Assembly (NCBI GenBank): GCA_977017575.1
Contig: CDRNVI010000138.1
Span: forward strand, 1 to 64,000
From: Paramoeba atlantica
Taxonomy: Eukaryota; Protista; Discosea
Direction of reading: 5' to 3'
DNA: 64,000 nt
Shown piece after piece: positions 2,534 through 28,197 of the stretch. Under the pieces are notes generated by a model that was not told where the DNA came from, searched no databases, and was given only the letters and a program-made list of their open reading frames with translations. The translations under genes were made by a program, and so were the position numbers. Each line of letters starts with the position of its first letter. Positions within the stretch are counted from its first letter, which is position 1.

Positions 2534-2739
2534 TGAAATGTTAGAAAAAAACACAGGAAGCCAACTACAGTCAAAAACAGACTGAATTCTTTTTGTGAAA
2601 TGTCAGGAGACACTGCAAATATGAAATTTTTTTGATGATGTTGGCTTCTGAGATTCAGAAAAGATTGAAAAATAAACCCCATTGTTAATCTCTATTTTTA
2701 GAGAAAAAAGGTTGTTGTTCCTTTTTTCTTTTTCACTTT

Positions 2740-4476
2740 ACAAAAATTGTCTTGGTGGTTTGGAACAAACACACTTGGCATTGCCACACTCTTTTACCAC
2801 TGGTAGTTTAGGTTAATTTCTCCACAGTCCTTGGACTGAGGTGAAAAAGTGACCAAAAAAGATTTATACATTAGTACTTTGTTATAAACTTTTCCCTACT
2901 GGCTAGCCAGAGCTTATGCAAGTCTGTGAGAGTCAAGAGTGTTGCAAAGGGGAACCAACAAACAAACAAACAACCCAACAACAAAAAACAACTAAACTCC
3001 TTGTAGATCCACCTTTGAAGCTGTGAAGGTGGTGTGAAGAGGAAAGATGAACAACCACACAGTAGGTTTTTTATTAAGAATTTTTTGAACACTTTTCAGG
3101 AAAAATCTCAAATCTTAAATTAAAAAAAAACAGAAATATTGAGAAACTGAGGAAAACTGGGACAACAAGAAGGGAGGAGGAGAAGGGAAGGCCTCCTTTG
3201 CACCAGAAGCTTTGCATCAGTGTGTATTGTTGTTGAGATCAACATTCTACTAGCAGGTATGTACCCAGCAGTTTGAATGGAAGGATGGAAGAAATAAATT
3301 ACTAAAAATTATTGCAGAGCTCTTAGGAGGAGGGCAGGACTCACAACACTCTCACAACATTCAGAGAGGAGGAGAACACAACCACTACCACCATGGATGA
3401 TGCTGAACAGGTTGGGGATTGCTTTACTAAGTTATTTGGCAAGAAAAAAAAAAAAATGTACACTTTTCTTACAAACCCCCTTTTGCACAGAAAAATATAG
3501 AACTTTTTTGTAAAATACTTTGCCATAAATTTTACGAATTTACTTTGATAGAAGAACCTTTTACTCACCAAAAGATGCTTGATTTCTGTCTTGAAAGTGA
3601 ACCAGAACTGAGGCTTGTTGAAAACAAAAGAGCTGGGTCAATTGGGAGGCACATTGCCAAAGCAGTTGATCAGTTGTTCTCAAGTTCACAGAGAAAATCA
3701 AAAAATGGGAAATATCACTCTATTTGATTTTTGTAAAGGAAGAAACAAAACCTTATTTAAATTTTAAAGATTTCATTTTGAAAATAATTAAGAAGAAGTG
3801 TGAGAAAATGCAAATAGCTTACAATGGTGGTGGTGGTGGTTCTAAGGAGGAGGAGAGTGGAGTAACGATGGAGTGGATGGTTGATCAAGTTATGTAAGAT
3901 TATTTTGCTAAGTTACCAGTCTGTTTTGATGGAACCCCTAAGAAAAATCGCTTGAGAGGACAACTCAAAGAAATTATTGCCTTGAGATTAAGAGAGAAAG
4001 GGATAAAAAAAAACAAACAATGTGGTGGATATTGGTTATTGAGGTGGATTTCAGAGAGAGATATTCTCGAAAGAGTTGAGGAGAGGAGGGAGGAGCAAAC
4101 ACAAGAAGTAGGTTTGACCATGAGCTTCAACAAGGAATAGGTTTTTTGTTTTTTTTTGTTTTGAAGAAAGGAAGGAAGAGAGAGAGGGGAGGGAGGAGGT
4201 TGCAAGAAAAGAAAGGAAAGAAAAGGAAAGAAAACAAAAACTATAAAACAAGAATGAGAAAACTTGGTGGTGAGAGATGGTGGGGGGAGGTGATTAAGAG
4301 AAGGTGATAAAAAATTAAAAACCTTTAAACAAAACTAATGACTTTTTTTTGTGTACAGAGGAGTCCAAAAACTGTACTGTCCAGACAAAACTTGTTATGA
4401 ATTAAAAAAGAACAGGTGGTCCACATTTTTTGAATCCCCTAGAAAAGAAATGCAAGATGACTTCCAATTCCTCCAA
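2740..4476 (+). pseudogene. Decayed spliced coding remnants in the 5' part of the transposon (unknown protein, two weakly winged-helix-like segments)
   Basis: Plus-strand frames read as protein but are broken by TAG/TGA/TAA. Intron-like gaps at about 3062-3131, 4140-4359 and 4477-4595. Segments RAGSIGRHIAKAVDQLF..KNGKYHSI and RLREKGIKKNKQCGGYW. Confidence 0.4.
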
Positions 4477-4584
4477 GTAAGTGTAAAAACAAATTTTATT
4501 TTTGTAAAAAAAATTATAATAATTATAATAATAATAATAACAAGTTTTGATTTTGTAATTTAAGATTCTTTTTTTTAATATTTT

Positions 4585-7500
4585 ATGGTGTTTAGGATTT
4601 CTTTTCAAAACTTGGCTCACAATTGGCTTCAAATTGGAACAAAACAAATTCTCACACAGAAACATTATGAAGTTTTTCATCATGATGATGGTGAATCATC
4701 CACCTCTGTAACCACAGCAGCAGCAGCAGCAGCAGCAGGTTGCACTCCTCCACCTCCATCTTTCCCCTCTCTATTCCCTCCTTCACTTGAACAGAGGAAA
4801 AGCCACCACTCATCCTCATCACCATCATCATTGCCACCACTTCTCTCTAATGTTTTGCCAAAACCTCGAAAACTTTCAGATGGAACTCTTGGCTTGGATG
4901 ATAAAAAAAGAAAGAAATTGATTCTTTCCCTCTTACCTTTGTTTGGTGGACAATTTGTTGGGAAGATTGATGATATTGCATCAGAATGCGTTTCGAACAG
5001 CTCTTCCTTTGATACTGGTCCTGGGATCCTTCGAATTCACAACAGAACGAATGATATTGGAGGGTTTCTTTCACTTGAAAATGTGTCTTGTGTTTTGTCT
5101 TTTAATTCGAATGCAATTGCTCAAACATTGGTTGTTGATCCAAAGTTACATGTGGAATTATGTAATTTATATAAACACTCTTGAAATCTTGTTAAGATTG
5201 ACCATCTTCCTCACCTTTGTGTGGAGTTTTATATTCAAACAATAGATATGTCCACACATCTTGATGAGAAGGAAGTCAAAACAATTGTGGTGATTGATCT
5301 TGGTAATTGTGGTGGATTGGAATATTGGTGGGGTGTGAAAGTGAAAATGAAACCTGAAGATCAGCAGCAGTTTACCTCTGAGAAGATTGAAGAATCTTAT
5401 ATTTGGGAGAAAGCAAATGAGAGTCAGTTTGTGCATCAAGGATTTGTAGAATCATTGCTGAGGAAGGGAAGAGCAATTCTGATATTTCGAGAATACTTGA
5501 AAGGTTTGGTGGAGGAAGGTCGATGGGAGAGAAAGTTGCATCCTTTGGTTGTGAATTGTCTCTATGCAAATGTTCTCTTTTCACAAGCTGTTCAGAACAA
5601 TCTTGCAAAGCAGGATCTTTCACAACAAACATTGAAAGAAAAACCACTTTTGGGAATTTTAGAAGCTCTTTTTCATTTTGTCAACAACACTGTTGTCTTG
5701 AAAGCTGGAGGGTATTCAGATTTGTGGTCTTGTTTTGGGCATGCTCCTTCTAAAGACTTTGTGTTTGGGTTTCTCCCTGAGAAGTTCATTCCACTGAATT
5801 TCTCCAAGGAGGTGAAGCTTAATTTTCCTCTCCCCTCTCAGTTTATGATTCAATGTGGCCTTCCTGGTATTTTATGGTTTGGTGGTTTCCACATAACTAT
5901 AAGGCAGTCAATCTATGCAACCCAAGAGGATGGCCTCATTTCAGTGAAGATCACCTGTGTTGACTCAACTGTGTCTCTCAAATGTCCAATGTTCTCTCAA
6001 AAAAAAAGTTTCAAGGGTGATGTTCAACTTTCTTCTGTTTCTTCTTTTTCTTTTTCTTCTTGTTCTCCAAATGCTTTCTCAAATTTTGCTTCTGAGAATG
6101 GGTGTTGTTTTTTTATTCAGGTCAACAAAATACAACCTTCTTGTTTTGAGAAGAAAAAATCTGTGAATCATAGGCAGTTTTTGTACTTTTTAAATCAGTC
6201 TTCCTTTGCTTGTGATGTATTCAAAATTGTTTGTTTTTGTTTCTTGAAACCATTTTTGATCTTGCAAACCTCCAAATGTCACCTTTCAAGGACGGATGGT
6301 GAATCAGCTGGTTCATTTTGTAGTACAATTATGAATGACCAGGATTTGATCAAATCCCTCCAAAATTCAAGTATGTTTTCAAGAGGAGTTGTTTACAGAA
6401 AATACAATATGAGCAGCCAAGAGCAGACAATAGGTCATGTGTTGGATAATGGTTCAAAGTCATTGAGGTTTCAATTTTTCCATGATGCTGCAACAAGTGA
6501 TGGTTGTAGTAGGTTAATTACCAATCGAAAGAATAACCTTTATAGTGACTATGATTCTGCATTGAAATTCTTGAAAAGGGGTGTCCAACCACCCAAGTCA
6601 GGTTTATTTTTATTTTCTTTTTTTCTTTTTTTTCTTTTTTTTCTTTTTTTTTTTTTTCTTTTTTTTCTTTTTTTTCTTTTTTTTCTTTTTTTTCTTTTTT
6701 TTCTTTTTTTTCTTTTTTTCAAAAAGATTTTGAATTTTAAAAGTTTTTGTTTCTAGAAAAAAATGAAAGAAATATCTTTCTCACTGTTGGCTTGCCCTTT
6801 TCTCCTCATTATCAAGATTTGAAAAAGGTTGTTAAGCAACAAAAACGATTAATTCAAACCCTCGAAGATCAGGTCAAAATGTTGACTCAAAAGTACAATT
6901 ATTTGGCTAGGAATGAATCTTCTCTTCAATCTTCTGTTGTTCTTCAATCACAAAATGAGGATGAGTATCTCCTTGAGTTGGTGAAACAAGCAAATGAAAA
7001 ATACAGCAAGAGTTGGTATCAATCATTTCATTACACCTTCATTGTGCAACAAATGGAGGTATTGACAGCATCTGATGGTCGATCAATACAATAGAACTCT
7101 GATGTTCTCCACTTTTTCTCTTCCATCTTATTTGTTGGTGGGAAGAAGACAATCCAAACTCTGATAGGAGAAGGTTTCCAAGGGCAAGGAAATAAAGGCA
7201 GTTGTTTGTGAATTGATCCCTCGAAATTCAATCTCTTTGTTCCTTCTCTAACCAAGATGAAAGAGTTTCTTCCTCCAATTGATCCTTACTCTCAAGAGAA
7301 TCTTCCACTGAAATGTGAAGTGATTCGAAAAATGTTTGTGCAACGAAAAGAGAATGGGAATTGGAAATATGAAAAATTTCTTGGAGGTCTGGTTTCTGAT
7401 GAAATTGAAATTCAATCAGGGTTGGTGTATCTCTGTTTTTCAAATCGGTTGATTAGTTGTGCTTCTCAAATCTTGTGGATTTCTTCTCTCAGACAAAATG

Positions 7501-7960
7501 ATAGTACTAATTTGGTTGTGAATGATTTGGCAAAGAAAGTGAACCACTTCTTTTTTATCTTGAATTGTAGGACTATTTGTGTTGAACTGGCCTACTACCC
7601 AATGGTGGGCCTTTCTGGAGATGAGTTGTTTCAGCAAGTGGAAAAACTTGAAGGTGCTCTTAAGAAGCAAGCTATTATTGTTACATGAACATCAACAGAT
7701 GGTTTCAAGGGTTCGGGCAAGTATTTGTCCAAAATTAAAAAAAAATCCATTCTCCACATCTTTGATTACATGCATTTGGCAAAATTAGGGAGAAACCAAC
7801 TCTTGAACAAGTGCCTTGACTTTCCTTGTGGTTTATTTCGTGAATTGTCTGCTGAAGAAGAAAGTTCGAACACATCACTGCCCTCCTCACCTCCCTCAAA
7901 ACAAAGAAAGATGACAGTTGATGATGGTGGTGATGTTATTGGGGAAGAAGATGAGGTTAT
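4585..7960 (+). pseudogene. Long N-terminal region plus N-terminal half of a P-type DDE transposase (truncated, premature stops)
   Basis: ORFs 4585 and 5221 share a frame across TGA 5182. Intron 6602-6756 joins them in frame to ORF 6747. ORFs 6747, 7257 and 7725 share a frame across TAG 7092, TGA 7209 and TGA 7686. Motifs LVSDEIEIQSGLVY, LAKKVNHFFF, VELAYY, IVT*TSTDG and HIFDYMHLAKLGRN follow the P-transposase RNase H order. Confidence 0.8.
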
Positions 7961-9127
7961 CTCACCAACCACTTTGGGGGGGATGTTTTATCCCATCAAT
8001 AATGATCGTCAACAAAAGTTCATGGGATTTCTGGCTCTACAGTTCTTGAGAGGAAACCTTCATCATAGAAAATGGTTTATCCAAACTGGGAAAAGTTTCT
8101 CCGAAAGTTAATTCTGAATGGAGGGAAAGTCTTGTCCCTTGCCCACAATAGTCAGACTTGTGATGAAAATGCTTTGAGGTGTAACATGTCATGATTGACA
8201 CAAGAACATAATTTCCTCAACTCATCTGTTGTATTTGGGGATATCAAGTGGCTTGTCAAAGCAAAACATCCAAGTGATAAGCTCTGGTCTGTGTCACATC
8301 TCTGTGGTGTCTTTGGAATTGATTACACTGGAGACAAAATTCCTGTTTCCCAGCTATCAAATAGTGGTCACCAACTCTGAAATACACAGACCTTTTATCA
8401 CAACGCATTGACAGATTCAAAGATGCAACTCCAAATTTTGCAAAAACTTCTTTCAGAGCCACCGAAAGAATCACTTTCCACTTCATCATCATCTCAACCT
8501 TTGTCTTCATCCTCCTCACCTTCATCATCCTTGCCTTCATCCTTGTCTTTGCCATCTTCCTTGCTGCCTCATTCCTCGTCATCTTTGTCTTCATCCTCCT
8601 CACCTTCATCATCTTTGCCTTCATCATCATCATCTCTGTCTTCATCCTCCTTGCCTTCATCATCATCTTTGCCTTCATCATCCTCCTTGTCTTCATCCTC
8701 CTCACATTCATCCTCCTCACATTCATCCACACCTTTGTCCTTACTGTCCTTGCCTTTATCCTCCTCACCTTTGTCATTATCCTCACTGTTGCCTTCGGTG
8801 CCCTTGCCTTCAGCATCCTCCTTGTCTTCATCTCACATTTCCTCAGCTTTTTCCAAGTCCCTCTGCAAATTTTTTCAAAAGTATTTTGAGAATGCATTGC
8901 TTTCATCATGAAAAAAAGTCTCAAAAAAACAAGACAATCCAAGAGAATCAATGGTGGTGAAGAAAAACAGCCGGGGGAAAGGGGGAGGTGGGGGAGGACA
9001 AGGAAGAGGAAGAGGGCTAGGAAGAGGAAGAGGAAGAGGAAGAGGAAAAGGAAAAGGGGATTCAGGAGAGAATCCTGAAACAGCTGGAAGTAAAAGAAAA
9101 AGGTGAGGAGGCAAAATAAATTCTTGA
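7960..9127 (+). pseudogene. DEDDh-type 3'-5' exonuclease domain followed by Ser-rich and Gly/Arg-rich tail (premature stops)
   Basis: After a frameshift near 8000 the frame reads KVHGISGSTV..WEKFL..VLSLAHNSQTCD (ExoII-like, 8141-8164), SVSHLCGVFGI and HNALTD (ExoIII-like, 8399-8416). It stays in frame through TGA 8192, 8378, 8909 and 9104 to TGA 9125-9127. ExoI was not found. Confidence 0.7.
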
Positions 9128-9275
9128 TTTTTTGACTTCATTTTTTTTTTGTCATCCCAAAAAAATGACATTTCAAAAAAAGAGGGTGTCCTGTTTAGAG
9201 GTCTTTTTGCAGGTAGTTGGCTTCCTGCGGAAAAAAAAAAGCAAAAAAAAAACAAAAAAAAGGCAAAAAAAAATT

Positions 9276-9541
9276 CGTCGGAAGCAGGATTTGAACCTAC
9301 GCCCCGTTTCCAGGATGTGATTTCTAGTCACAAAAAAAAGAACGAAAACAACCAATTTGGGGTATCAATAATTTGGCTAAATTTAGCCAAATATCTAAAA
9401 GTTCGCCAATTACGGTGACGTCACTGAAATTGGCGAACTTTTAGATATCTGGCTAAATTTAGCGACGATTTTACATCGATTTTTTTCTTCAATTTCACTC
9501 ATCAAGAAAAAGTACGTCTTAGACCACTCGACCATTCCGAC
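9276..9541 (-). tRNA. tRNA-Ser(AGA): tRNA-Ser(AGA) interrupted by a 182-bp insertion between D-arm and anticodon stem
   Basis: 5' part 9541-9515 is GTCGGAA TG GTC GAGTGGTCTAA GAC G. 3' part 9332-9276 is TGTGA CT AGA AA TCACA TCCTG GAAA CGGGG C GTAGG TTCAAAT CCTGC TTCCGAC G. Joined they give an 84-nt cloverleaf with all stems paired, a long variable arm, G73 and a downstream T-run. Confidence 0.92.
9376..9463. repeat. 88-bp near-perfect palindrome (3 mismatched pairs) inside the tRNA insertion
   Basis: GCTAAATTTAGCCAAATATCTAAAAGTTCGCCAATT-ACG-GTGACGTCAC-TGA-AATTGGCGAACTTTTAGATATCTGGCTAAATTTAGC. A nested perfect 22-bp palindrome ATTTGGCTAAATTTAGCCAAAT lies at 9371-9392. Confidence 0.97.
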
Positions 9542-20535: not shown

Positions 20536-23500
20536 TCATTTTTGGAGAAAATGTGTTACTTGTTGAAGCCAATCAAATTTGTGGTAATGGGCGACTGTCT
20601 CCAAAATATGAAGACTTTCTTGAATGCTCTCTCGAGTTTGTAATAATACAAATGTTCCAGAACAAGCTGGACATGTTTCTGCAACATCTTCAGCTTTCAC
20701 CATTCGGCATTTGTTACAGGCAAGATCCTGTTTTTTTTTTGTGTGAAAAAAAGAGAAAAAAAAGAAGAAAAGAGAAAAGAAAAAAAAAAGAAAAGAGAAA
20801 CAAAAGAATTTTTGCAAACCTGAAGTTGATAAGCCATCGAGAGTTGCTGGGCTGTGGTGACCAACCGAAGTTGAATTGCGGATGTGTCATACGGATGTCG
20901 ACAATGACGACACCTCCATTTCCCAGCAAGTAAAAGAGGATCTCGAAGAAGATCAAGATCACAATTGGATGAACAAAATGTGCACATAACATCTGATAAA
21001 ACATAAGATGGACATGGGTTTGTGAACATTGACTCAGCGGAATATTCAGGAACATTCAACATCCGAAGCAATTGTGAGTGCATCACATGAACTCGCTGTT
21101 CAGATTCCGGGTCAAGTGCCAACACATGACAGACAGATTTAACAAATTCGAGTCCCCAATGGAAATCTTTCTTGCCGAGATGATAGGCCATAATCTTGTG
21201 TTCTGGAGGCCATTCTTCTTTTGATGATGATGAGTCATCAGAATTGAGAGACAAGCTATTTGTACAACTTCGGTGAGATGGGAGTGCTTCGAGAACACCC
21301 ATCATTCGTTGGGAGACTGAATGAAACAATTGATCTAACTCACCGCTAATATCAGAAGAGGAGGACTTAGCGCCTTTTTTTCTGGTTGTCGCCAACTTTT
21401 GAAATCGAAAAACACTGAGACAGTATTGAGCAATTGTTGCCAAAAAGAACTCTTGCAAGCGGGATGGAAGATAATCTGCAATATTCCAATGAGCAACAAC
21501 ATCCACACCATCATCAAGATCGCCACCACCATCAGCCCTTTCATCAGGAAGTAGAAAAGAAGGTTGCTGCTTTTGTGATGACTTGTCTCCCAAACTCCCA
21601 ACCACACCACCATAGTTATGTTGATCCATAAACACAAATACTTCCCACATTCTGGCAATTTCAAAAGATACAAATTCAAGAGCATTATCTTCTCCGATAT
21701 TTCCAAGAACAAAATCCATGTAGGCTCGAGCATCGGAAAGAGTTTGCTTATTTGTTGCAATAATCAAATGATTAAAAGAAGCAGATACAACTTCTGCACC
21801 AAGTGTTCTCAATCGACGAACAAGCCTTGAATATACTTTTTTCATTTGGAGATTGAGCAAGTGGTGCAAGGCTGCATCATAGAACTTTGAATAAGGGTTC
21901 GACAACCATCTGAAACAGTGATCGATCAACATGTCAACTAATGAACGATACTGGCTATTCCCAGAACCGACATCACGAAGCCAATGGGAGACAAGCTTGT
22001 TCACCATCTCGAGAGCAGGGAGCAATGGAGAAGCACCATCTTCAGCAAGATCAGTTTCAGTTAGACTGTTCAGCTGCAAAATTGTATTGACTGCGACATT
22101 TCGGACTGTCAGTTCCACTGTAATATTGCGGTAGGCTTTCGGAACGCAAATGGTTGGGCGAACAAAGTCATCAAAGGCCAATTGTGCCACCACAGCATTG
22201 TCATCTTGTTCAATTTGACCAACATCAGCTCGAACTGAAGGAGAATACCACAGCAAGAAATTATTTGCTTTCAACAAACGAGCAAATTGAATATCAGCCA
22301 AAAACACTGGATGGTCTGTCTGGAGATTTGCAATTGGGACTTCAGCATAACGCGCACAGAGGAGTTGTCGAACAAGCCAATTACTTGATTCCCTCTGTCG
22401 ATTCACTAAATAGGCTGCCGCTTGGTTCTCCCACTGAATTGCTGGATACATATTATCAACTTGGTTTCCGGGAACTTCAACAACAACCATTCGCTCTAGC
22501 TCCGAGATATGTCGACAAACAGATGCTCGATCCATTGTGGACTGCCACATAAGCAACCTTGGTGCAATTTTATTTCGCAATGTTTCAAGTTCTTTCTGAA
22601 GAGCTGATAAAGCAGCATCAGCATCTGTGAAAGTGCGAATTTCTGCTTTTGCAGTCCAACCGAATCGTCGTAACGAGCGGACAATCGCTCGTTCAGACTC
22701 CTGCCGAGCTGATCTGACAGAAGCACCATTAATGACAAGAATAACAGCTTCCATTGAACCATCAGGTCCCGTGGGTGAAAACAATCCAATGAGCCCTCGT
22801 GTCATTCGAGCAGCAAACGAAAAGTAGACATACAAAGTATCTTTCAAAGAGAAGTCTGCTATGTAGTCATGAAGCTCTTCACTTTCATGACTCGCAGCAA
22901 CACCATATCTTTGCAATTCAGAGAGAGAGAACGAGAAAGAAGACGAATTTGGATCCGCCATGCGAGCCTTTCTTGCTGATGGCGTTAACCCACAAACACA
23001 TCCGAGTTGAAGAAGTGCACGAGTGACCAATGGGACGTTGGTCTCATAAACAGCATGGATGTCAGGTTGAGAAAAAAGCGCACCAAGTGTTTTTTGGTTT
23101 GCTTCATAGGACTCTTCATCCATTTCCACCTGTTTTTTTTTCAACAAATCAATAAAAAATAAATGATATTGAATATTAAACTAACTAACTCATTGATTTT
23201 TTTTTGAAAAAAAAAACACAAAATTAAACCTCAAGAACTTCAATTTCACGACGACCACCACGAGGAATGCGGCACTTGACTGGTTTCCCACATTGAAGAC
23301 GGTCTACAGTGGGACCATCATCAGCATGAACATAAAAGATACGAGGAACATGGACACGCAGATCATACACTTGACCATGAATAAGAGCCCAAACTCGAAG
23401 GTGTCCAGGGCGATTTGTGGGAATAATTTGCAAAATATGCCACGGAGCTTGCCAGACAAGCGATACCTGGCGATCCAGATAGGCACCAACTCCGAAACCT

Positions 23501-26500
23501 GCTCCTTTTCGAAGAAGCCCCAAAGAACGGGGCACTGGGCGTCCTTGATCAAGACAACGGATCAATTGCTCCTTCTTTTGTCGTTTCAACTGCCTCTGAA
23601 TCTGCCATTTCGTTTTCATCCATTTCAACCATCTATCATGCTCATGCTCAGGGGGCATCTTTCCAAGTAACACCAACTGTTGTTCAAGGCTCACCAATGT
23701 GCTGCTGCCTGTTGCTGTTGCAGGCTTTCTCTTACCACTCCCTTGCAAGGAATAACTTGTGGTGGGAAGAATTGCCACCTCTGTCCCAGAGGAGGGAGTT
23801 TCATCCTTTTTCGATGTCGACACCAATCCACCCATAAGCTTTCCAAAGGTGTCTGTGAGAGAGCGTTGTGTGTTTTGTGTGCGCTGTATTCGACGTTTTA
23901 ACCAATCAGGGTGAGGAACTCGAGGCGCAGGGTTTTTGACGTTCTGAAGGGCAGCAGGAATGGTGATAATCTTACGGACAGCCCCTCCAAGTCGATCAAT
24001 ATAATAATCCCAGTCCACAATATCTCGTAAGTTTGTTGAACAACGAGGATCTTTTGTCCATTTGCGGAGATAATGACTTGCACGATCAGTATCAGCTGAA
24101 AAGATTGCCACAGGAATGGCTCTCTCTGCCACAGGAGCACCATTGGGTTGCCGAGAAATAATAAACTTGCATGCTAGACCTTTTTTCTCAACCATTTGAG
24201 AGCCCAAAAATTCAGCAAGGCGCCTTGCTGTACACAAGGCTGTCGATTTCTGTTTGTTATATTCACCAAGCGCTCGGGACATGACTGATGAAGACGAAAT
24301 TAAATCTAATAACTCATCATCCCCCATTTGTTCTCCCTTTTGATACAAGATATCTAACCAATGATTTGCCACCTAGAAAAATAAAAACAAGAAAAGAAAG
24401 AAAAAGGTTTTGTGAGGTTTTTTTTTTGAAAAAAAAAAAGATTGCAAAATTACCTGGGCGACAGCTTGATAACACTCAGAAAGAGAAGTCCCTTTCAAAA
24501 ACTGCTCAAACACCTGAGCTTGGAAAATCTTAATTAATCTCAACTCTCCACGACGTTTTAATTCAAATCCTTTGAGCTCAGCCAAGCTCCCATCTGGAAA
24601 AAACACAGCATATCTTTTTTTGAGCTTTTTCCCCTCCTCCGTGCTTGCAGGGAGGATCATTGCTTTATAGGGTCCATCAACCTTCAAACAAAATATTATT
24701 AATGATATTTTTTTTTGGTTTTTTTGGGGGGGGGAAGAAAGGAAGGAAAGAAAAGAACAAAAAATTCTTTTTTTAAAAAAACCTCAAAGAAAATAGAATT
24801 CTCAGCCCGGGTCGAATATGTACCACTCGCAGGATCAAGAGTCTGATACTGATGATTGGTAAATCGCTGTTGAACCATCTGATTGAGCAATACACAAGGA
24901 TAAGAAAACACAACTTTCTTGGGAGTTGGTGTTGCATCTTCTTTTCCTTCAGGAGGTGGGATCAAGGCTCGAATCTCGAAGTTCTCAGGGAAAGAGTTTG
25001 GAAGCATACACCAAATACCATCAGTGTCCAACTCAAGTGGTCGACCCACTTTCTCAACAAACACTCGCGCCTCCTTAATGATTGCGGCTCCAGTGTGAGT
25101 CACAATACCAGCCATCTCCATACTGGACCACCGAGAACCTTTCCTCATCACATAACCATAGAAAGAATTCAAAATACATTTGTGAGCCAACTGTAGTGAG
25201 TCAAAAAGCACAACCATCTTTTTGGCATCTGTGATAGTATCCAAATTATTTTCTGCCAAACCCTCTTTTAGTTTTCCTTGCCAACGTTTCAAGCTCCCTT
25301 TATACTCGTACCGGCGATCTCGAAAAGCTCGAACTGTATCAACATAGAACGGGTTCTCTCTCATACAAACAGTTGCGGTGCGCTTCTCGGACTGAACGTT
25401 ATGTGTTTTCTTGTATGTTTTACGGGTAAATTCATTGAGTCTCTTCTTAAAAATAGATTGTTGTTGCTTGGCTGGAAGTTGCATAAAAGGGACAAGGTCT
25501 TCTGTTGACGCGTCAGAGCTATTTTTGGAAGAAGAAGACCATTTTGAAGAAGAGGACGAGGATGAGGACGAGGAAGAACCAGCTGTTTTTTTACCTTTGT
25601 TGTAGAAGCTTTTGCCAGTTGATGTAGAGGGTGCACTAACAGTAGGAGCAAAACGTTCATAGACCAAAGAAGACCGAATTGCGGCTGTTTCATTTCGATT
25701 GGCTGGAGAAAAATCACCACGCCATACCCAATCCATAACTCGCTGACAACTAGAATCCGGTCGATTATGATCACAAGCAGCACATGTTGCAGCATCGACA
25801 ACGGCAGAGGGTTGGAGACGATTGGTAAGAATGATATTCGGATACATCGCACCGACATCCAAGTGATAAATAAGAGGTGTCTCTTGGCGACGTGGTCGAT
25901 CTCTTAAATCTTCAAGTAACTTCTTAATCGCTCCATAAACGTCATCATAGTTGGTAACATGGCTCATTGAAAGACTGTTTTCAACCTCAATCGCAAATTG
26001 AAGTACCGCTGGGAGTTGATCAATCATTTCTTGACAAGTATCAGAACAAAGATTAAACTTATAAGGAAGATCAGAACGAAAGACTCCGGATTCAATGGCT
26101 TCCACATGCCCACCAATATATGTCTCAGACTCTAATAAATGCCCATTCCACGTTTTATCAAGAGGTTCAGTTCGTTTGTTTGGAAAAATAATATTGGCTT
26201 GAAAGGCTTCTACCATCAGCAAAGTCTCACAAAGGGTTCCACTTCCTTTTCGCAAAACATCATCTGGGTTCATTGGAATAATTGTACAGAGTGAATAGAT
26301 AAATGGGTGCACATACTTCTGGTATAAATAGTATGTCGCAACAGCATCGGAAACTGAGTAGGAAGCCATCATTTGTGGTCGTTCAGAGGCATAAGGGACC
26401 ATTAGCTCAGGATCAATCTCCAGAGGATCGAAACCAAGCTTCGCTTTCGCTACAGCTTTCAAACCCTGACTTCCTTGAGGCAAATAAGAATCACGTTTGA

Positions 26501-28029
26501 CCCAAGCGAAGGCGTCAAGATGAGATGCGAAACGGCAACGATATTCATCATTGGCATCTTTGTAAACTCCAATTAATTGTCGCATATCCATCCCATGAGC
26601 CTTGGCTCTGGCCTCAACGAAAGGCCAATCGAAAAAATCACCGTTGAACGTCACAAAAACATTTGGACGATATGTTTGAATGTCAGAAACGAATCGTCGA
26701 AGCAAAGCAGCTTCATCAGGTTCGTTGTACACAGTAAACATTCCTTCAAACTCAGGTTTTGGTGTAAATTCAAAATCTGTTTGGTTTCATATTTTAAAAA
26801 TAGAAAGGGAAGTAATAAATAGATATTGTACAGAAAAACAATATTTCTAGGAAATGAAAATGAATGATGAGAGAACCTTCGATATCCTCAGAAACGACCG
26901 AGCGATTAGTAATCAGAAAACCTTCACCGTCTATCATATAAGAAATCATCATGATTGAATCAACTTCAGCATCAGGAAATTTAAGTGGTAATTTTGTGGT
27001 CTCAATATCAAATGCAAAGACCTGAAAGAGAAGAAAGAGAAGAAAAAGAGAGAAAAGAGAGAAAAAAGAGAATTGTTAAAAAATTCTTTCCTTTAGCAAA
27101 AAAAAAAGAAGAATATTTCTCTGAAAGAATTATCCAAGAAGAATCAAAAAATATCTTTTCAAAACCTTTGGCTCGCCTCGAGTAATCAAATCTTCCCTTC
27201 TCTTTAGTTGAACATCGCCTGTGTTTTACAATAAATAAAAATAAAAAAATGTCTTTTTTTTTGATGAAAAATGAAAAAATTGAAAAAAAAATGAAAACAT
27301 ACCATGAACCAGAGAAACTTCATACCAAAGACCGACACGGTATTCCAAGTCAATCGCAGTTCGAATGTAATAAGGGACATCATATTCTCGAATATCCTCA
27401 ATCAACTGTTCAGCATTCACAACATTTTCCTCTTTCTTTTCAAAAACATCAACTTCACCAGACGCCTTTTTCTGGTTACGAGCAACAATGGGAGCAAGAA
27501 TCGCCCTGGCAGCAACAAGATCTTGAACAGTATGGAAAGAAACTCTCAAATATTTCTTTTGCAAACCAGACAAATGATTTTTAAGATCAAGATCTTCTTT
27601 GCTATTGTACGATAACGAACCGATCCGAGGCAATCGTCGACGTAAAATGGCCTCAACGTCACGGAGCGCTCCGTTCTTTACCCCGACGTAAAAATAGGGT
27701 TCGTGTGGTACTGTTGCTTTAAATGTTCTTCCATCTTCTTGAATGAAATACAAATCTAAACATGATTTTAGTGCTCCTGTCTCAGAGTCAGGTTGCAGAG
27801 TTGGATGCATATTCATTAACCACCCCAATTTCTTGTTGCTTTCATCAACTCCAAAACGGACAAATCCAAAACGAGCATCCAAGGCATCTTCTCGGATGAC
27901 CTTTTCTCTCATTTCATTTAATCTTTCTTCTGGGGTTTTCGATTCAAAACCCCCCTTACTCATCCCTTTCGATCCCTTCGATCCACCCCCATCTTTCCAA
28001 GAAGTCTTCTTTCTCTTTCGATAAGACAT
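20536..28029 (-). CDS. POLE: DNA polymerase epsilon catalytic subunit
   Basis: [104 protein letters not shown], and C-terminal CysA/CysB zinc motifs. GT-AG introns join the exons in frame. Confidence 0.98.
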
Positions 28030-28197
28030 TTTTTCAAAAAAGAAAAGAAAGGACAAAACTCAAAAAAAAGAAGTAACGGTCAAAAAAAAAGAACATCTCC
28101 CAAGAATCTTGTTCGCCAAGACTTTTTTTCAAAAAACTGGAAAACAACACAACATACAAACACCTTGTGTGAGGAGAATAAGAATAAGAATCATAAT

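Follow-up and report, generated by a model that had tools for sequence, protein, structure and literature searches.

Remnant of a predicted DEDDh exonuclease in a decayed P-type transposon of Paramoeba atlantica, and apparently intact relatives that combine both domains

DnaQ-like nucleases are already known from two transposon superfamilies that are related to P, Kolobok and Dada. KolobokD elements, which have been reported from molluscs, arthropods and cnidarians, encode a DEDDh (DnaQ) exonuclease that resembles TREX and ERI1, and the authors proposed that this enzyme degrades DNA intermediates from the 3′ end; Kolobok elements have in addition been reported from Naegleria (Kojima and Bao 2022, PMC9587614). 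Dada elements of Laccaria and Ectocarpus contain a DEDDy exonuclease domain, for which a role in processing of the cleaved 3′ end was proposed (Kojima and Jurka 2013, PMC3706591). Cleavage by the Drosophila P transposase, which uses GTP as a cofactor, leaves 17-nt 3′ extensions (PMC7776569). A search of the literature returned no description of a DEDDh domain in a P-type transposase.

We analyzed a 64,000-nt stretch of DNA from Paramoeba atlantica (positions 1 to 64,000 of contig CDRNVI010000138.1, assembly GCA_977017575.1), referred to below as the window. A first-pass annotation had proposed that a gene in this window combines a P-type transposase with a downstream DEDDh exonuclease, and that it defines a new P-family lineage. 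The claim of novelty stands in part: as far as the literature was searched, the pairing of a P-type transposase with a DEDDh domain is new, but DEDDh and DEDDy exonucleases as such had already been published for Kolobok and Dada. The standard genetic code applies in this genome (45.7 Mb in 248 contigs, about 35% G+C), and its introns are T/C-rich with lengths of about 80-200 nt.

The gene lies within a transposon of 6.7 kb (2552-9229) that is bounded by 17-bp inverted repeats with one mismatch between the two arms. An A-rich 8-bp target-site duplication, GAAAAAAA, flanks both ends. On another contig, C164, the two flanks adjoin with one G and an A-run between them, while the counterpart of this site in the window reads G+A7, element, G+A10. 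C164 therefore contains the empty site, and region 2552-9229 is an insertion that generated an 8-bp target duplication. The exact 15-mer core of the inverted repeat, for which about 0.09 chance occurrences are expected genome-wide, is found only at the two element ends and in one copy on C163. This latter copy (C163:93921-93935, minus strand), near which no transposase DNA match was found, could be a solo end, or else a derivative that has undergone deletion.

Several other features surround the insertion. A distance of 47 bp separates the right transposon end from the start of a serine tRNA gene (window 9276-9541). This gene is interrupted by a stretch with a perfect-type palindrome of 44 nt (9376-9463); at the empty site on C164, neither the transposon nor window region 9345-9491 is present. 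To the left, a repeat of ~485 bp (1700-2185) occurs in at least 30 copies with 90-98% identity on many contigs, and is adjoined by a second repeat of 114 bp (2179-2292).

The features of the element, together with the predicted parts of a paralogue described below, are listed in Table 1. The N-terminal open exon shares 72-73% DNA identity with the paralogous copy on contig C142. The putative intron that follows it starts at a CAG/GT junction (6601/6602) and ends with AG at 6755-6756, so that the frame is maintained into position 6757, and in its T/C-richness it is like the introns of the DNA polymerase epsilon gene that the window also contains. The region downstream matches positions 20-346 of the 754 positions (46%) of a transposase family profile, which was built from metagenomic relatives, with 264 bits (E = 7.5e-82). 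It contains the first catalytic D (7398-7400), the second D (7698-7700) and the DxxH motif (7764-7775), and its frame is interrupted by TAG at 7092-7094 and by TGA at 7209-7211 and 7686-7688. No Ulp1 domain, dioxygenase-like ORF, catalytic-E exon or ExoI motif was found in the window. The window copy is dead: it has six in-frame stops and encodes nothing functional today.

Table 1. Predicted features of the transposon in the window and of the paralogue on contigs C145 and C148
Feature	Position	Strand	Evidence
Left target-site duplication, GAAAAAAA	2544..2551	.	C164 empty site
Left terminal inverted repeat, 17 bp	2552..2568	+	
N-terminal open exon without family match, common to the C142 paralogue	5221..6601	+	
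Putative T/C-rich intron	6602..6756	+	Read from sequence
Predicted P-type transposase, N-terminal half	6807..7817	+	Family profile match
Acidic and Ser/Pro-rich linker, subfamily-specific, colinear with C142	7838..8006	+	
Deletion junction and reading-frame change	8006..8010	+	C142 comparison, profiles
Predicted DEDDh (DnaQ/TREX-like) exonuclease remnant	8009..8416	+	Lineage profile, paralogue alignment
ExoII	8138-8176	+	Within exonuclease remnant
ExoIII (HNALTD)	8399-8416	+	Within exonuclease remnant
Ser-rich low-complexity tail, TGA 8909-8911, then Gly/Arg/Lys-rich end, frame unchanged	8417..9106	+	
Right terminal inverted repeat	9213..9229	-	
Right 8-bp target-site duplication	9230..9237	.	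C164 empty site
C145/C148 part 1, transposase N-terminal region			TNP-like_RNaseH_N, 20.8 bits (cut-off 24.6)
C145/C148 part 2, D2/DxxH and insertion-domain exon			
C145/C148 part 3, catalytic-E exon			
C145/C148 part 4, C-terminal transposase exon			
C145/C148 part 5, exon with full ExoI motif			
C145/C148 part 6, ExoII and ExoIII exon (exon 8)			RNase_T, 31.4 bits (cut-off 24)
C145/C148 part 7, Ulp1 protease after Lys/Glu-rich tract			80.5 bits

The interruptions could be read differently if TGA and TAG were translated under a variant genetic code, in which case the gene would be intact. We suspected such use of TGA first: this triplet accounts for 5 of the 8 stops in the two frames of the gene, and the TGA at 7686 stands opposite a TGG Trp codon in paralogues. 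The conserved long exons of the DNA polymerase epsilon gene in the window are, however, free of in-frame stops under the standard code, and the TGA and TAG triplets of the transposon gene are therefore real stops. In addition, the catalytic half of the transposase is physically absent, and the paralogous copies on C142, C165 and C206 carry frameshifts too. A variant code is thus hardly credible, and we treat the gene as decayed. The TGA at 7686-7688, aligned with the Trp codon of both C142 and C145/C148, corresponds to a G-to-A change outside a CpG. The polymerase gene itself, encoding the catalytic subunit (20697-28056, minus strand), has T/C-rich introns and a Ser-rich insertion within the polymerase domain.

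For the downstream part of the gene we took the exonuclease domains of seven metagenomic proteins, all from outside the P. atlantica genome, built a DEDDh lineage profile from them and searched it against a six-frame translation of the entire 64 kb in which stops were replaced by X. This resulted in a single match, on the plus strand at 8009-8416, with 51.1 bits (E = 5e-17). The match spans positions 64-171 of the 187 profile positions; ExoII and ExoIII are kept and ExoI is absent. With X at the stops, the same region is colinear over 152 residues with exon 8 of the paralogue on C145 and C148 (28% identity, E = 3e-11), and a whole-genome protein search with the exonuclease exon of that paralogue recovers it as well (E = 4.5e-5). 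All motifs that the first-pass annotation had reported in 7960-8450 are present where it placed them, in the frame with codons starting at 8006: VHGISG from 8018, AHNSQTCD at 8141-8164, LWSVSHLCGVFGID around 8282-8323, and the ExoIII motif HNALTD. Accordingly, the catalytic D of ExoII and the H and D of ExoIII are present, and the D and E of ExoI are deleted, which agrees with the earlier statement that ExoI is missing. The frame is interrupted by TAG at 8066-8068 and by TGA at 8192-8194 and 8378-8380. A Pfam search with ten stop-free pieces of the window gave nothing relevant, since the four exonuclease pieces are 20-61 aa long. Judged from these comparisons, the region is a decayed C-terminal DEDDh (DnaQ/TREX-like) domain of predicted 3′-5′ exonuclease type, as had been claimed, and the profile match lies far above chance.

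The missing part of the gene could be delineated with the decayed paralogues on C142, C165 and C206, which are 77-78% identical to the window over 6953-7837. The C142 copy is colinear with the window up to position 8006 (window 7973-8006 corresponds to C142 17792-17759 with 85% identity) and again from 9082, where window region 9082-9143 matches. Between these two stretches C142 contains positions 374-538 of the family profile (105 bits), including the catalytic E, and at the corresponding place the window has the exonuclease remnant. As C142 is colinear to 8006 and retains the catalytic-E half, the window copy has undergone a single internal deletion of ~1 kb at about 8006/8007, in which the remainder of the insertion domain was lost along with the catalytic E and ExoI. 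The first-pass annotation had likewise proposed one deletion and the loss of the insertion domain and catalytic E; the latter is borne out by the profile match, which ends at position 346 in the window and resumes on C142. It had placed the deletion near 7850-7960, however, and this position has to be corrected, since 7838-8006 is still colinear with C142. The frameshift it had noted near 8000 is a genuine change of frame that coincides with the deletion junction itself and is not a separate event.

Neither blastp nor the lineage profile detected an exonuclease remnant on C142, and hence the window copy alone shows the link between transposase and exonuclease within this subfamily. An ExoI-like sequence (HHLETCG) and further exonuclease remnants had been read by eye in C142; neither of the two methods supports them.

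An apparently intact paralogue is present on contigs C145 and C148, which have in common a 7.9-kb block with 99.6% identity (L026:484-8369 on C148 and L027 on C145). Its gene model was predicted from DNA, and the exons were searched singly and not as a spliced protein. The exons are consecutive, open and on one strand, and every junction has GT..AG sites and a compatible phase. Two of the junctions are confirmed by paralogues without the intron, LAKK/V... in the window and ...K/IR.P in C142. A canonical C2H2 finger (C-x4-C-x12-H-x4-H), absent from either exon by itself, arises where the last transposase exon meets the ExoI exon. The score of exon 3 for TNP-like_RNaseH_N is below the cut-off because an intron splits this domain. 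All five DEDDh catalytic residues are present, and the PDB matches of exon 8 are Pol III epsilon and TREX2; phmmer searches of single transposase exons against the PDB gave nothing. The Ulp1 protease probably belongs to the same polypeptide, after the exonuclease. No inverted repeats or target duplication were seen at the ends of the 7.9-kb block.

The block also contains a convergent ORF of 322 aa (7187-8155, minus strand) with an HxD...H pattern, a putative dioxygenase for which Pfam gave no match. A 376-bp stretch (L026:8370-8745) is present on C148 and missing from the otherwise identical copy on C145; it may be a small insertion.

The window copy belongs to a second subfamily of this genome that has diverged strongly: its transposase part is 44% identical to exon 4 of C145/C148 and its exonuclease part 28% to the corresponding exon. 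The same domain order in so diverged a subfamily indicates an old fusion rather than a local accident.

A HMMER search with exon 4 against 1.84 billion representative proteins gave 95 matches. Ten of the clusters were looked up, and all of these were metagenomic or run assemblies with uninformative names (two were called 'hypothetical protein'). Among 49 relatives analyzed with Pfam, TNP-like_RNaseH_N (PF21787) was matched in 29, with ~35 bits for P0002 and P0039, and RNase_T (PF00929) in 11, with up to 74.8 bits. Both domains are present on one polypeptide in P0002, P0005/P0098, P0039, P0041, P0030 and P0065; P0065 contains Ulp1 and Myb domains in addition, and P0039 a SAP domain. P0002 and P0005 are colinear with all C145/C148 exons, the finger junction included. 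With the lineage profile, an exonuclease C-terminal to the transposase was found in 13 of the 31 relatives of at least 600 aa, these 13 being sequence clusters (50%-identity representatives). All five DEDDh catalytic residues are present in P0005, P0039 and P0030. In a quick tree, unrooted and poorly resolved, of the 37 matches that span the D1-E region (the other 58 do not span it and were left out), the exonuclease is present in almost all subclades, and no more than four of the proteins that could accommodate the domain are without it. This suggests that the exonuclease is a family-wide trait of this transposase family. The AlphaFold structure predicted for P0005 has a mean pLDDT of 79.4 and a disordered linker at 639-735, and it matches both P transposase and DEDDh folds.

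The domain order in the window, the catalytic E retained on C142, the exon order of C145/C148 and the single metagenomic polypeptides together support the proposed fusion protein, and its recurrence in relatives argues against a separately inserted element or the recent capture of a host gene. Two neighboring genes, or a fragment of a host exonuclease placed next to the transposase by a chance rearrangement, might nevertheless be considered, as the spliced C145/C148 model is predicted from DNA, and an exonuclease domain that is closely related occurs in a host gene on C20/C63 (1279-aa ORF). Such an origin is very improbable in view of the uninterrupted two-domain polypeptides in 13 sequence clusters and the C2H2 finger that spans an exon junction. 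Moreover, the two remnants in the window lie in the right order inside one pair of inverted repeats, and the exonuclease remnant and the fused relatives have lineage-specific features in common. We therefore retain the fusion in what follows.

The host gene on C20 (L041:3187-7026, with a twin on C63) is an intron-less ORF of 1279 aa that lies among host genes (DAGAT, hydrolase). It contains RNase_T at residues 703-869 (73.8 bits) and no transposase part. Against the transposon-lineage profile its exonuclease scores 100.7 bits, which is above the score of the transposon's own copy. This ORF could be the nearest cellular relative of the transposon exonuclease or a domesticated derivative.

When the family profile was searched against the PDB, which contains no Kolobok transposase, the Drosophila P transposase (6p5a) was the first match (E = 1.8e-11). 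The alignment starts at the first D, takes in the second D, the DxxH motif and the insertion domain, and extends to the catalytic E; no hAT or other transposase was among the matches. The first fold match of the P0005 model was 6pe2/6p5a (E = 4.5e-12, TM 0.68). In addition, region 2552-9229 has the terminal inverted repeats and a target duplication within the 7-8 bp that are characteristic of the P superfamily. No THAP domain was found among the Pfam matches of the 49 relatives (E<=0.001), in the window or in the C148 exons, and the N-terminal exons match no family. On the strength of the 6p5a profile match, the P0005 fold match and the 8-bp duplication we assign the family to the P superfamily, and we consider it probable that this placement, the fused exonuclease and the death of the window copy jointly hold.

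A placement in the Kolobok superfamily, as a KolobokD with its DEDDh exonuclease, has to be weighed against this assignment. Kolobok is close to P, hAT and MuDR, the KolobokD nuclease is TREX/ERI-like, and Kolobok occurs in Naegleria (PMC9587614). The target duplication is 8 bp here, however, and not TTAA; the best PDB matches by sequence and by fold are P transposase, with the proviso that the PDB has no Kolobok transposase; Pfam TNP-like is matched in relatives; and the C145/C148 exons have no zinc finger between D2 and the catalytic E. We regard membership of Kolobok as quite improbable and continue with the P-type assignment.

In the apparently intact relatives a single polypeptide starts with the RNase H-like transposase of P type, in many cases followed by a C2H2 finger, and continues through a long disordered linker into the exonuclease. 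The tethered enzyme of active copies would act on the 3′ single-stranded DNA ends that arise from P-type staggered cleavage, and its most likely targets would be the donor flanks, which would be made joinable. P-type transposases are unusual in generating 17-nt 3′ overhangs, and in Drosophila their processing is left to host repair. Trimming of 3′ overhangs by a tethered exonuclease is plausible, and a natural lineage whose transposase has a 3′-5′ exonuclease of its own would provide a direct handle on overhang processing. The broader proposal, that the family is a widespread and undescribed branch of the P superfamily which has had the exonuclease since its origin as a working part of transposition that removes 3′ tails, is put forward tentatively, as a possibility that we ourselves hold to be somewhat doubtful. 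If it were true, the element itself would mend the donor site or edit the transposon ends, with no need to await host enzymes.

The substrate could also be RNA. In the P0005 model the fold matches besides P transposase are Pol III epsilon, ERI3, TREX1/2 and DnaQ domains (TM 0.65-0.81); ERI3, ERI1/3′hExo and ERI2 are among the best. ERI-type RNases fit the modeled fold about as well as TREX and epsilon, so that a DNA and an RNA substrate appear both compatible with it. The exonuclease might then be a cargo directed against silencing or defence, degrading small RNAs (as ERI-1 does) or cytosolic nucleic acids in concert with Ulp1 and the putative dioxygenase. Besides the ERI matches, the Ulp1 domain carried by the C145/C148 paralogue would suit such a role. 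At the sequence level, on the other hand, the PDB matches are the DNA exonucleases Pol III epsilon, TREX2 and 9l8a; the exonuclease is fused to the transposase across the whole family instead of forming a separate gene; and the window subfamily has neither Ulp1 nor a dioxygenase. A cargo function therefore seems unlikely to us, less so than the other alternatives considered above, and the action on 3′ DNA ends remains the reading that we prefer.

Compared with known systems, the family resembles Drosophila P and vertebrate THAP9 in its RNase H-like core with D, D and E, the DxxH motif and the large insertion domain, as well as in the 8-bp target duplication and the inverted-repeat ends. It differs from them in the C-terminal DEDDh exonuclease and the C2H2 finger, to which some members add Ulp1, SAP or Myb domains; a THAP domain was not detected, and the inverted repeats are 17 bp here versus 31 bp. 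With KolobokD it shares the combination of a cut-and-paste element, there of a sister superfamily, with a DEDDh exonuclease. Kolobok, however, has a TTAA target duplication whereas that of the window element is 8 bp and A-rich, and the zinc finger that in most Kolobok lineages separates the second catalytic residue from the third is absent from the C145/C148 exons. In Dada, which targets small RNA genes, the exonuclease is of the DEDDy type and lies between the second D and DxxH; here it is of the DEDDh type and C-terminal, after a disordered linker. To TREX1/TREX2 and DNA polymerase III epsilon the likeness consists of ExoI, ExoII and ExoIII with H-x4-D and of the fold, but these are free-standing or polymerase-bound cellular enzymes, whereas the transposon exonuclease is part of a transposase and has lineage-specific W-D-x-E-T (ExoI) and AHN...DE..L (ExoII) motifs. 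To this comparison the window adds a diverged second subfamily of the same architecture, for which the inverted repeat, the target duplication and the empty site were verified. P would join Kolobok and Dada as a superfamily with recruited DnaQ-like nucleases, and this suggests that one problem has been solved repeatedly in the same way.
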